Below are positions 3,106 to 60,825 of a stretch of 64,000 bases of DNA, piece after piece. Within the stretch, counting starts at the first letter, position 1. The number at the start of each line of letters is the position of its first letter. Both the position numbers and the translations under genes were made by a program. The notes beneath the pieces are model-generated. The model made no database searches, was not told the DNA's origin, and was given only the letters and a program-made list of their open reading frames with translations. Location of the stretch: sequence record MW812339.1; one strand, given 5' to 3'.

Positions 3106-3212
3106 TACGGGGAGTTTATGCGTCCTGCCGAACAAAAAAAAAAATAAAGGACATTATTCTATGTAGGAAAGTACCCATGTGCTGTAACACATGGGTACGG
3201 AGTTACTCCCGA

Positions 3213-12093: not shown

Positions 12094-12167
12094 CGGCTGT
12101 CCCTCGTTGTAGTCATATCACTGGCCTAAAACGCAAAAAAAAAGAAAGGGACCGAAGTCCCTTCTTG

Positions 12168-15442: not shown

Positions 15443-15511
15443 GATTTCCAATCGGGGACAAAAAAAGAAAAGGGAAATCCCCCACCGAAGTGGGGGATGT
15501 CGCCAGCCTAA

Positions 15512-30976: not shown

Positions 30977-31023
30977 GAAAAAAATAAAGTCCTCTCTACC
31001 CTAGGGTAGAGAGGTACTTTTAT

Positions 31024-33761: not shown

Positions 33762-34259
33762 TTATTTGTTGCCCTGTCCCATCGCTTCTTTTTCCAAGAG
33801 TTCCAGCGCACGGGCACCGACAAGTCCATTACCCGCTTGGTTGATGGCGGCATTACGACGACGGATGTTATCCAGCATCAGCAATATCTCCCAACGTGGG
33901 CGGTCTAAGAACCTGTCAATGTCCATCTTGTAATGTTCACCCACTTGCTCACGCAGGAAGGTGGCATACCAGATATCGTACAAGCTGCCGAAGATGGGGT
34001 TCTCGAACTCTGAGAACCCTACCTGATGCAAACCTGTCTCAAGACCGAGTGTTCGGTCATACGCACCCATCAACTCGTCATGTGCTTCCTGATAAGTGAT
34101 GGGGCGTGCGCTACGCTGCTTGAACAGTGAGGTGGTATCCATCTTGAGCGTGGTAATGATTTGCTCCGATGGGACCTCTTCCTGGTCTAGCCAATATCGG
34201 CGTATTGAGCCAGCAAGAATTTCTGAATCTCGGACACCACTCGAGAGAGCACGAAAAAA
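33762..34259 (-). CDS. Probable -1 frameshift extension of the 680-aa ORF (GT-like tail chaperone C-terminal domain)
   Basis: This frame is open through the slippery T TTT TTC (34259-34253). HYKMDIDRFLDRPRWEILLMLDNIRRR resembles P2 E' / T4 gp51-type motifs. The alternative start, ATG 34142, has a poor RBS. Confidence 0.6.
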   Translation of the reverse strand, partial: FFRALSSGVRDSEILAGSIRRYWLDQEEVPSEQIITTLKMDTTSLFKQRSARPITYQEAHDELMGAYDRTLGLETGLHQVGFSEFENPIFGSLYDIWYATFLREQVGEHYKMDIDRFLDRPRWEILLMLDNIRRRNAAINQAGNGLVGARALELLEKEAMGQGNK

Positions 34260-36229
34260 ACCCTGTCCGGAGAGATGGTAACGATACCACGGTACAGACC
34301 TTCTTTCTCGCCGTGCTGTTTGCCACACGCAGGACAACGTTTGCCCATGTAACCAAACACCGCCAGGCGGGTACGTTCGATGTACTCAGCAATTGCGTTC
34401 TCGAACTGACCAACGTACAGACGGTCAGACGACAGCTCTTCGAGCATTTCGATAATCTTCTGCTCGTTGGTTTCGGTGGTTGGAATCGGCTGGTATTCAC
34501 CGTTGACTTCACGCTCTTCGATAACCGTAATGGATTTAACCATGTGGGCATAGCGAGTCAGTCGACGGGATTCAGCGGTTAAGCGCATGTGGTTCTCACG
34601 CTCACGTTCCGTACCGAATTCTGCCAGTGCTGCGGTGGTCGATGCGTTGACATCTTCAATCCAACGTTCGGTGGAGTCGAAGAAGCGACCGAGGGACGAA
34701 CGACCGAACTCGACCTTCACGTGGTTGTAGTCGAAGATAGCAGCAGGGTCAACGGCGTGTGCTTTCACATACTCCGCTTGCTCAGCCATGCTAATCATAG
34801 GACGTTCAGTGCCACGTTGACGAGCCCACAGTTGTTTCTGCAGGTCAGTGAACAGACCAGTACCGAAACGAATGCAGCGTGCGATGTTCAGCTTAACCGC
34901 ATCTTCCTGAGTACAACCGTCCAGACCACACAGCAACGTCCACGGAATACCGCCTGGGAACTTCGCCTGCAATGGCCCCAGGACGATTAGCCAGTAGTCA
35001 GCCAGGTCGACTTTCTCCAGCAGTACCGTACGCAGGTCATTACCTTCGCAGTCAATGGTCGCTTCGGTAACAAACTGCAGAGCGAACTCAACCATGTGAC
35101 GCATGTACACGCCGGAAGACGAGGACAGCATCAAGCCGTAGGTCTGCATCCCGATGGTGGCAGTTTCCAGCGCCAAGCGCATGTCGAAGTCACACAGGTC
35201 GCGTTCGTGCGGCGAACGGAAACCGACGTAGATACCGGTTGCAGGCAACCAGACCGAGTTCGGAATACCCGACTTACGTACACGACGCAGTGCCGCAATC
35301 GCACCAGTGTGCATGTTGTCGCGCGGAGAGATAGCGCCAGCGAAGTTACCTTCTGACAACTCAACACGCTGTTCCCATGCCGTATCGGTACGCATCAGCG
35401 CACCTGCAAACGACGGGGTACCATCCTGCAGACGCGGCGGCGTCATGTTCAACGCACGATAGATAGAATCGTAACGTTCCTGCTGCTCAGCAGACTCAAA
35501 CAACGGACGCCCATCTTTCGGTGAACGTTTGATGCTGTTGAGGAACTTCTGCAGGTCTTCTGCAATCAAGTTGGGGTCCTGCATGATGCCCAGGAGCGTT
35601 CCCGGCTGCAGTAAGATGTTGTTCGGGTCATCAGAATCCAGCGCCGAGGTTTCAGCCAGATGGTTCTGCGTACCGAAGTTAATCTCACGGTCTTCTGCCA
35701 CTTCCGGAACCTGTGGAGCGGCTTCGTCTTTAATCGGAGCAGCCTGAACGGGGGCGGGTTGTGGAGTAGGTTGTTGGACAACCGGTTTCGGCTGCTCTAC
35801 CGGTGCCGGTTCTGGGACTTCGGCATGAACGTGTGGACGTTCCGGGTCGGTCAGGGAAACACTCGCTGTGGTAACACCAGTAGTGACCGTGCCGGTCGGC
35901 ATAATCGGGTCTTGGACTGGTGCCGGTTGATGGTGATGCTGGTCAAACACCGCCGCAGGGGTAGGCAGTGGCTCGTCTTCATACTGCGGACGTTCGAGCT
36001 TCGGCTCGGGCTGTCTGTGAGCGTAATGTTGATTGTACGCTTCTTCTGCCTGGGCAAAAGAAAAAGACGGGTTAGTACGTTTGATGGCAAGGATGATCGT
36101 ATCCGCATCTGCGTCGTCAGACACAGTCGGAAGGATCACCTCTTGCTGGGTAGCAGCCGCGACTGGCGCAGGCTGCTCGGGATTAGGGCGACGAGCATTG
36201 CTCGGACGCTGGTCCTGGGTTTCAGACAT
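34187..36229 (-). CDS. Putative tail or baseplate assembly chaperone with a Pro-rich N-terminus (680 aa)
   Basis: VWLPATGIYVGFRSP and a CPACG Zn knuckle resemble T4 gp26-like chaperones. Contains a slippery site near the 3' end. Confidence 0.55.
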   Translation of the reverse strand: MSETQDQRPSNARRPNPEQPAPVAAATQQEVILPTVSDDADADTIILAIKRTNPSFSFAQAEEAYNQHYAHRQPEPKLERPQYEDEPLPTPAAVFDQHHHQPAPVQDPIMPTGTVTTGVTTASVSLTDPERPHVHAEVPEPAPVEQPKPVVQQPTPQPAPVQAAPIKDEAAPQVPEVAEDREINFGTQNHLAETSALDSDDPNNILLQPGTLLGIMQDPNLIAEDLQKFLNSIKRSPKDGRPLFESAEQQERYDSIYRALNMTPPRLQDGTPSFAGALMRTDTAWEQRVELSEGNFAGAISPRDNMHTGAIAALRRVRKSGIPNSVWLPATGIYVGFRSPHERDLCDFDMRLALETATIGMQTYGLMLSSSSGVYMRHMVEFALQFVTEATIDCEGNDLRTVLLEKVDLADYWLIVLGPLQAKFPGGIPWTLLCGLDGCTQEDAVKLNIARCIRFGTGLFTDLQKQLWARQRGTERPMISMAEQAEYVKAHAVDPAAIFDYNHVKVEFGRSSLGRFFDSTERWIEDVNASTTAALAEFGTERERENHMRLTAESRRLTRYAHMVKSITVIEEREVNGEYQPIPTTETNEQKIIEMLEELSSDRLYVGQFENAIAEYIERTRLAVFGYMGKRCPACGKQHGEKEGLYRGIVTISPDRVFFVLSRVVSEIQKFLLAQYADIG

Positions 36230-38876: not shown

Positions 38877-38920
38877 GCTGCCCCTCTTACAAAAAAAGAG
38901 GGGCGCACGGCCCCTCAGTT

Positions 38921-43329: not shown

Positions 43330-43653
43330 ATGCTCGATAGCTTCACTACCCTCGCCGAAGTAATACCTTCGCCTGATTCGACCAAGTATAAGGTGTTGCA
43401 TGACTACGCAGATTTCCTGCGCAAGCACCCAGATACAACAGAGGAGGTCGTCGACCCGAAATACGCATGGCCGGAGACCCATAGCTTCTACGCCTATTGC
43501 CGTCTAAAGGAATACGACAACAGTATCATTTACCCGATGATGCTGATGAACGGAATTGACACCCCATTCGACTTCACACCCGACATCAAATCTTTACTGG
43601 TGCCGAGCGTCAGTGTAGTCAGCAACATCTTGTCTACAATTGTAGATGCCTGA
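43330..43653 (+). CDS. Small protein, possibly a LysM / T4 gp53-like baseplate wedge component
   Basis: AAGGAG RBS. The pattern YPMMLMNGIDTPFDF...LLVP resembles gp53/gpX LysM proteins. Confidence 0.45.
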   Translation: MLDSFTTLAEVIPSPDSTKYKVLHDYADFLRKHPDTTEEVVDPKYAWPETHSFYAYCRLKEYDNSIIYPMMLMNGIDTPFDFTPDIKSLLVPSVSVVSNILSTIVDA

Positions 43654-43689
43654 AAAAAAGAAGGGACGCCCAGTCCCTTCTTCTTCCAT

Positions 43690-52325: not shown

Positions 52326-52379
52326 TGTGTTCTCCCCGTCGGGTATAAAGAAAAAAAGAGGGGCCGAAGCCCCACTTTC

Positions 52380-54578: not shown

Positions 54579-54659
54579 TCTGTCAACCTCAACAAAAAAA
54601 GAGGGAAGGACAGAGGCGTTAGCCCCTGTCCTAAACCTAATTACTTACCAGTCACGCTG

Positions 54660-60788: not shown

Positions 60789-60825
60789 GAAAAAAAAGAA
60801 ACCCACTCCGAAGAGTGGGGATTTC

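Follow-up and report, generated by a model that had tools for sequence, protein, structure and literature searches.

Comparative analysis of a 64,000-nucleotide stretch of DNA (hereafter the window) from Erwinia phage pEa_SNUABM_29 (MW812339.1), an SPN3US-like jumbo phage of the genus Seoulvirus, points to a programmed -1 ribosomal frameshift at the end of a 680-residue open reading frame (ORF) located on the minus strand (ORF A; 36229-34187, with its TAG stop at 34189-34187). The shift would generate a short and a long product, a reading whose probability we put at about 0.7; that the two products serve as assembly factors is held at somewhat less than even odds. The prediction of a programmed -1 shift yielding two products with a common N-terminal part is, in itself, strongly supported by the comparative evidence presented below. 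In the proposed mechanism, most ribosomes would pass straight through U_UUU_UUC and terminate 21 codons on to release the 680-residue protein, and a minority would slip into the -1 frame with two tRNA-Phe on UUU and UUC, both of which would re-pair with UUU in that frame. Slipped ribosomes would then add the 163 codons of a second frame, B, yielding an 822-residue protein made of the common first 659 residues and the helical B domain. GenBank records two 'hypothetical proteins' at this locus, the product of the 680-aa gene and that of a 126-aa gene starting at ATG 34142. The latter, a homologue of SPN3US gp40, corresponds to the last part of B and would be mainly the tail end of the extension rather than a free-standing gene. 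That the slip occurs on the ribosome, and that the two products act jointly at a set ratio, is what we infer.

The slippery junction and its conservation

At the junction, the 0 frame of A reads AGG GTT TTT TTC GTG, which sets a T_TTT_TTC heptamer (34259-34253, minus strand; T7 run at 34254-34260) in the X_XXY_YYZ register, the P site being occupied by Phe658 and the A site by Phe659. A terminates at its TAG 21 codons further on. Reading in the -1 frame meets no stop from 34337 until 33764-33762 and offers 163 codons after the shift (33765-34253), hence a product of 659 + 163 = 822 residues. A first-pass annotation of the same DNA had described the 680-aa ORF, the codons and register of the heptamer, the opening of the -1 frame down to 33762 and the length of the predicted fusion, all of which proved correct upon recheck.

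Ten A or T runs of at least 7 nucleotides are found in the 64-kb window, among which the T7 run of the junction is the only one to lie deep within a long ORF. The nine others are A runs of 7-11 nucleotides on the plus strand (3134-3144, 12135-12143, 15460-15466, 30978-30984, 38891-38897, 43653-43659, 52351-52357, 54594-54600 and 60790-60797), that is, T runs on the minus strand, which carries most of the coding sequence. They are located outside long frames or near the upstream ends of frames, often beside G+C-rich palindromes, and resemble intergenic terminator or promoter-region tracts.

The junction was compared across 56 loci, representing 44 non-identical junctions, that were collected from GenBank phages through BLAST matches, from metagenome contigs encoding distant A homologues and from IMG/VR. 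The three single-protein scans of IMG/VR relied on peptide patterns independent of the shift site, and in another scan one of the two patterns included Phe-Phe. The sample covered five SPN3US-like genera (Seoulvirus, Erskinevirus, Machinavirus, Wellingtonvirus and Derbicusvirus), phiKZ, the 201phi2-1-like clade, Noxifer, Agricanvirus (Ea35-70), the RSL2-like and Moabite/PhiEaH1 phages, pTD1, Miami, Xoo-sp14, Bacillus phage AgentSmith and metagenomes, including marine metagenome relatives with only 35-38% identity in A. Two 0-frame codons, TTT TTN, occupied the same alignment position in all 44 junctions, distributed as 26 T_TTT_TTC, 13 T_TTT_TTT, 1 T_TTT_TTA, 3 G_TTT_TTT and 1 G_TTT_TTC; the heptamer was thus perfect in 40 of the 44, the other four carrying a G at the first position with U_UUY kept. 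Every complete locus displayed a -1 ORF of 151-176 codons starting from the site. Conservation of the heptamer and of the open -1 frame, which had been put forward as a check at the time of the first-pass annotation, therefore extends to the whole set. In phiKZ, A corresponds to gp77, which harbors a T7 run followed by a 165-codon -1 ORF ending in the small annotated PHIKZ076.4. The codon preceding the run was variable (GTT, CTT, ATT, ACT, GGT and others), and the distance from the run to the stop codon of A ranged from 8 to 44 codons among jumbo-phage loci, the position of the run being fixed relative to both conserved domains and the 0-frame tail of A past the run being itself conserved.

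Nucleotide conservation at the site exceeded that needed to preserve the protein sequence. Elsewhere in A, phenylalanine is predominantly encoded by TTC, with TTT:TTC ratios of 4:14 in the window, 0:18 in RSL2 and 0:12 in Xoo-sp14, and the fraction of TTT per lineage ranges from 0 to 0.54; in contrast, the first Phe codon at the site was TTT in 21 of 21 lineage representatives. Judged from this comparison, the retention of TTT at the site is far beyond chance, even if just a dozen of the lineages are independent. Since the run of the window is the sole run of this length situated deep within a long ORF, and since relatives keep it without exception despite a local codon bias in the other direction, the site is more than a chance occurrence.

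Homopolymers are prone to sequencing errors, and a single 822-aa gene miscalled as two because of such an error, or a recent pseudogene, might produce a similar picture; the locus is indeed fragmented in some SPFM Salmonella phage assemblies. The same frame arrangement was, however, found in 56 independently sequenced loci and never as a single ORF, and the conservation of the 0-frame tail of A past the run is not what either event would leave behind. This explanation is refuted by the distribution across the 56 loci, and its probability is negligible. As for the SPFM assemblies, the A and B homologues of about ten of them (LR535901-LR535917; Salmonella phages SPFM1, 6-10, 12, 14 and 20) match in short pieces and are annotated as odd-sized ORFs, which suggests many frame errors at the A/B region rather than biology.

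Coding of the -1 frame and the lack of a conserved start

Mean pairwise divergence was calculated by codon position among 16 SPN3US-like loci. Over the 90 nucleotides upstream of the site, divergence at 0-frame positions 1, 2 and 3 was 0.31, 0.25 and 0.51, respectively. In the 63-nucleotide overlap, which belongs to a dual-coding segment (34187..34252, minus strand) where the last 21 codons and the stop of A (0 frame) share their nucleotides with the first 22 codons of the extension (-1 frame), the corresponding values were 0.15, 0.28 and 0.29; on these figures, the lower divergence of the overlap is the expectation for two coding frames. Past the stop of A, in the stretch annotated as intergenic up to the downstream ATG (34143..34186, minus strand), 42 nucleotides yielded 0.38, 0.26 and 0.65 at -1-frame positions 1, 2 and 3, and the core of B yielded 0.30, 0.17 and 0.57. 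By periodicity, these 'intergenic' 42 nucleotides thus evolve as -1-frame codons with the same pattern as the B core. Consistent with a coding extension beginning at the shift site, the tblastn alignment of the 163-aa piece began at residue 1 in 62 of the 71 records matched.

The GenBank annotation is that of two ordinary genes, in which B (126 aa) is translated from ATG 34142, and the T run and the open -1 frame are incidental. Every database record annotates two genes in this manner, an ATG is present at the 34142 position in the three Seoulvirus loci, and the synthesis of a free B beside the fusion is possible in the window phage. Yet, as noted in the first-pass annotation and borne out here, no Shine-Dalgarno (SD)-like motif precedes ATG 34142, and the codon at this position is a Leu codon (CTN or TTG) in 13 of the 16 SPN3US-like loci. 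Among 29 loci examined for candidate starts, eight had no ATG, GTG or TTG between the upstream -1 stop and 60 codons past the site, and almost no candidate start of B carried an SD-like motif. Almost every genome has the small gene annotated from a different start codon, and one gene caller predicted none. Moreover, the 37 residues ahead of ATG 34142 are conserved as a -1-frame protein together with the 42 nucleotides described above, and the slippery run is maintained against codon bias. Two independently initiated genes are, in light of these observations, a very improbable account of the locus.

A slightly less probable scenario still is one of termination and reinitiation, in which ribosomes would finish at the TAG of A and restart non-canonically nearby in the -1 frame to make a separate B of about 140 aa. 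Such coupling would account for a coding post-stop spacer devoid of AUG, and would fit the T4-type phages described below, in which the stop codon lies 0-1 codons past the run. It would not be expected, however, to tolerate run-to-stop distances of 8-44 codons in jumbo phages with the run fixed relative to both domains, nor to place the overlap under dual constraint, and it provides no reason for TTT TTY to be held against codon bias.

In several lineages, a -1-frame stop is located just 2-6 codons ahead of the run, so that entry into the -1 frame is pinned to the run itself. The homology of ORF A in distant phages stops at the shift site. No protein carrying A and B in one frame was found among 61 word-index matches (528-721 aa; four additional, fragmented SPFM entries are shorter), and no fused A-B homologue was found among the best 150 of 1370 profile matches (279-705 aa). 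The programmed -1 frameshift proposed in the first-pass annotation thus finds support in the 44 of 44 junctions, the codon bias at the site, the periodicity of the -1 frame and the lack of a conserved start.

Stimulatory elements and the nature of the proposed slip

A small hairpin of 5 bp with a 9-nucleotide loop (34228..34246, minus strand) begins 6 nucleotides past the heptamer, in which tctcg at 34246-34242 pairs with cgaga at 34232-34228. The first-pass annotation had pointed to this stem; its presence and position were verified, but its role as a stimulator was not upheld. Over the alignment, 72% of the cells of the stem were paired with 0 compensatory changes, and the pairing was broken in the Wellington-like loci and in three other loci (L013, L014 and L016).

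Several observations weigh against the frameshift as we propose it. RNAalifold returned no consensus RNA structure downstream of the site among 17 relatives, the local fold in the window is no more stable than that of shuffled sequence (z = +0.35), and the upstream SD-like AGGG is not conserved; without a conserved stimulator, the efficiency of the shift may be very low. Four lineages carry a G at the first position of the heptamer, which weakens P-site re-pairing. The ATG at 34142 in Seoulvirus implies that some free B could also be made. Finally, the trans-frame A-B product is itself a prediction from sequence comparison.

The four G-variant loci read ACG TTT TTT or GAG TTT TTC and belong to the 201phi2-1-like and Phabio clade (L042, L043 and L054) and to Noxifer (L055). 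B is fully conserved in the -1 frame in all of them, and these natural variants can help to tell the essential parts of the site from the dispensable ones.

The sites of dnaX tau/gamma and of the insertion sequence (IS) elements IS3 and IS1 resemble that of A in using an X_XXY_YYZ-class heptamer read by bacterial ribosomes. They are associated with strong stimulators, in the form of an upstream SD or of a downstream hairpin or pseudoknot, whereas no conserved stimulator was found at the A site. A stimulatory element is, however, not obligatory for this class of programmed -1 frameshift, and given that no stimulatory RNA structure is conserved, the efficiency of the shift would be low and fixed. 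Low and fixed efficiency also characterizes the frameshift of the lambda G/GT tail assembly chaperones. In Escherichia coli, H_HH.U_UU.Y heptamers are among the most efficient -1 shift motifs, U_UUC is the second-best tetramer, and both U_UU.U_UU.C and U_UU.U_UU.U shift at more than 0.1% without any stimulator; U_UU.U_UU.C is, in addition, used by some IS elements (PMC4066793).

The same long protein would arise if the phage or host RNA polymerase slipped on the T7 run and added an extra U to some transcripts. Since the product would be identical, protein data cannot separate this possibility from a ribosomal slip. Most lineages have long runs (T7 in 31, T8 in 7 and T9 in 1 of the 44 junctions), and the multisubunit RNA polymerases of these phages, which are encoded next to A and B, are of an unusual kind. 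U7 runs are, furthermore, avoided in all frames of bacterial genes, possibly on account of slippage (PMC4066793). Polymerase slippage nevertheless fits poorly with pTD1, the Phabio/201phi2-1-like clade and Noxifer, where the run is only T6 or T5 and the -1 ORF is kept, or with the T4-type loci presented in the next section, where the run is T6 in all loci examined and where only ATT TTC is found in Klebsiella phage 0507-KN2-1, again with the -1 ORF kept; runs of T5 or T6 are poor templates for slippage. In addition, the A-site U_UUY register was kept in 44 of 44 junctions, a register that an RNA polymerase would not need. The strength of this last argument is tempered by the fact that an invariant Phe-Phe by itself also fixes the register. 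We therefore hold transcriptional slippage as the origin of the long product to be unlikely, although the phage RNA polymerases may contribute to the slip.

Possible function and the parallel with T4 gp26/gp51

ORF A is a homologue of SPN3US gp39 and of phiKZ gp77 (tblastn against PHIKZ077, E = 9e-16), and its surroundings are syntenic with those of the phiKZ gene, with a gp78-like gene upstream and a gp79-like gene and a virion RNA polymerase subunit nearby. It thereby corresponds to core gene cg18 of the Chimalliviridae (phiKZ gp077, Goslar gp081, RAY gp267), which is listed as hypothetical and is not marked as unique to chimallin-encoding phages; the word 'frameshift' is absent from the main text of that core-genome study (PMC10299810, Table S3 for the core-gene list). 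Neither SPN3US gp39 nor gp40 is mentioned in the main text of two virion-proteome papers, and the genes numbered gp77 in Goslar, PCH45 and PhiPA3 are unrelated. Homologues are widespread, tblastn with A matching 224 phage records and a profile search 1370 protein clusters at 50% identity. Unlike its cg18 counterparts, A of the window has an additional N-terminal region of about 190 residues (35660..36229, minus strand) that is, from its translation, rich in Pro, Gln and Ala and of low complexity; this region occurs in SPN3US-like phages and lies outside the shorter phiKZ-type homologues (~530 aa), and matches of A to PHROG 4585 and in tblastn begin at about residue 138-275. The remainder, residues 191-680 (34190..35659, minus strand), was predicted by AlphaFold2 from 41 sequences to form a folded core with a mean predicted local distance difference test score (pLDDT) of 87.5 and a predicted template modeling score of 0.87. 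Four near-invariant Cys residues in this core, arranged as C-x-x(-x-x)-C pairs at 434/439 (34913-34930, minus strand) and 632/635 (34322-34334, minus strand), probably form a zinc site, the second pair being located about 25 residues ahead of the shift site. B (33762..34253, minus strand; 163 codons and stop) has a conserved C-terminal helical domain, and modeled alone it yielded a helical structure of low confidence (pLDDT 57).

Database searches yielded few functional clues. A matched PHROG 8054 (E = 1.6e-295) and PHROG 4585 (E = 2.4e-63), and B matched PHROG 7580 and PHROG 12109, all four being families of unknown function. Pfam returned no match for 14 members of A and 14 of B; a TetR_C_17 match (E = 0.006, below the cutoff of this family) was discarded as chance. 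Sequence searches of the PDB with A or B found nothing, and comparison of the A model to solved structures with Foldseek produced no match (best E = 0.17). Against the BFVD, the same model first retrieved jumbo-phage homologues and, below them, proteins of about 250 aa bearing baseplate-hub names, among which were a 'Baseplate hub assembly protein, bacteriophage T4-like' (E = 9e-4, target TM-score 0.49), a 'Baseplate hub assembly chaperone' (E = 4e-3, target TM-score 0.51) and a 'Baseplate hub subunit'. These weak matches ranged in E from 9e-4 to 5e-2 and in target TM-score from 0.46 to 0.51, with 8-11% identity. Two sets of annotators had labelled A as 'T4 gp26 like' in GenBank.

Both gp26 and gp51 of T4 are classed as 'hub assembly chaperones', proteins that do not clearly belong to the completed baseplate (PMC3004832). 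Genes for gp26-like proteins (PF12322, T4_baseplate) were detected by tblastn in 752 phage records, and the junction with gp51 was inspected in Stenotrophomonas phage DLP6 (L058, accession via PMC5349666), four metagenome loci and two further phages (L058-L063 and L065). In DLP6, the gp26-like gene is followed by a gp51-like ORF of 60 aa (L058:15483-16369, minus strand). Twenty-five PF12322 proteins (38-80% identity to the first sequence) ended in an invariant Phe-Phe followed by at most one residue, and this Phe-Phe was encoded by T_TTT_TTC in register in DLP6, the four metagenome loci, Aeromonas phage 65 (Straboviridae) and cyanophage S-SM2 (Kyanoviridae). All seven loci harbored a gp51-like ORF of 57-69 codons in the -1 frame that was open from the site; one of these ORFs matched Pfam Gp51_C (PF28602), and three loci had no start codon at the head of the ORF. 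In Aeromonas phage 65, a -1-frame stop lies directly ahead of the run and only a 26-aa ORF is annotated in this stretch. The slippery Phe-Phe junction thus seems to be general in T4-type phages. Klebsiella phage 0507-KN2-1 (Ackermannviridae; L064:1650-1900) retains the gp51-like ORF in the -1 frame with just the ATT TTC (T_TTC) tetramer at the end of its gp26-like gene; a possible ATG lies a short way downstream, and the phage may represent a lineage shifting to independent initiation. The gene directly upstream of gp26 carries PF23849 (Phage_TTP_2) in the T4-type metagenome loci (L059-L062); in Aeromonas phage 65, this position is taken by the gene of the baseplate-tail tube initiator gp54.

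The A/B locus and the T4-type pair have in common a conserved part that ends in an invariant Phe-Phe on T_TTT_TTY; the ORF that follows uses the -1 frame, has no stop from the site onward and is often devoid of a start codon. The downstream ORFs are helical in both families and display, by eye only, a similar aromatic-Ile/Leu-x-x-x-Arg motif; the weak fold match of A in the BFVD may point the same way. The two systems differ in size, A having two to three times the length of gp26 (~230 aa) and B exceeding the 57-69-aa gp51-like ORFs by about 100 residues. The 0-frame tail past the site is, moreover, 0-1 codons in the T4-type genes, which also belong to a baseplate/tail module. The frameshift pair of T4-type phages is thus in a tube/baseplate context, unlike that of the window: the neighbors of A and B encode an RNA polymerase beta-type subunit, a helicase, two small hypothetical proteins, a further RNA polymerase subunit and a DNA polymerase, and their annotation places the locus outside any tail module, in agreement with the remoteness from tail genes noted in the first-pass annotation. 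Nor is there significant sequence similarity of the T4-type proteins to A or B.

A second point of comparison is the lambda G/GT-type frameshift of tail assembly chaperones, including P2 E/E+E', reportedly described by Xu, Hendrix and Duda in 2004. The A/B junction resembles it in that a -1 slip at a bare heptamer with no strong stimulator would take place near the end of the upstream ORF to give a short product and a longer one that shares its N-terminal part and adds a C-terminal extension, a likeness of architecture only, and in that the arrangement is conserved far past sequence similarity. It differs in the size of A (680 aa compared to about 100-150 aa), in the absence of any family or fold match of A to tail assembly chaperones in Pfam, PHROG, the PDB or the Foldseek comparison to the PDB, and in the site, which is a U run rather than of the G_GGA_AAG type. 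Thus, the 'G/GT-like tail-chaperone pair' of the first-pass annotation holds as far as its logic is concerned (two products, a common N-terminus and a bare heptamer) but not as a family assignment, which fails on position, size and family matches.

Other results speak against an assembly-factor role. A lies among replication and transcription genes rather than between tube and tape-measure genes as in lambda. The Churi homologue of phiKZ gp077 is listed as non-structural and present 15 min post-infection (PMC11849849), which is early for a tail factor. Alignments of A and B compared by hhalign to the single gp26-like and gp51-like proteins of DLP6 gave probabilities below 1%, and Pfam provided no sequence-level link of A or B to PF12322 or Gp51_C; the resemblance of the extension to T4 gp51 that had been claimed from its sequence was accordingly not substantiated at the sequence level, although the weak fold matches of A and the junction of the T4-type genes lend it indirect support.

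Taking both sides together, the function we consider most likely for the two products, albeit at somewhat less than even odds, is that of assembly factors that stay out of the virion and are related to gp26 and gp51, the baseplate hub assembly chaperones of T4. The link itself is tentative, drawing as it does on a weak fold similarity and the common junction. It is conceivable, in the same measure, that an ancient -1 frameshift joining gp26-like and gp51-like modules is common to T4-type myoviruses (Straboviridae, Kyanoviridae and relatives), phiKZ-like nucleus-forming jumbo phages and AR9-like Bacillus phages.

In the literature, subscription journals being outside our coverage, we found no description of such frameshifting either for jumbo phages or at the gp26-gp51 junction. 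Conserved -1 frameshifting in morphogenesis-type genes of phages is already known, and it is the jumbo-phage case that looks to have so far gone unannotated. If the frameshift is real, the annotation of a core gene would be corrected in several hundred jumbo-phage genomes, and a recoding event would be added to the biology of nucleus-forming phages, for which our literature searches turned up none. It would also provide a first handle on the function of cg18, as a protein made in two forms at a fixed ratio, which is typical of assembly chaperones. Should the link to gp26 and gp51 be true as well, the control of assembly factors by frameshifting, as in G/GT, would also reach the large contractile-tail phages, and could explain the gp51-like ORFs without start codons found in many T4-type genomes. 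An ancient frameshift shared by these groups would, finally, represent the long-missing contractile-tail counterpart of the lambda G/GT frameshift, and would make of cg18 and of the poorly understood gp26/gp51 pair a baseplate hub assembly chaperone produced at a fixed ratio of short to long forms.

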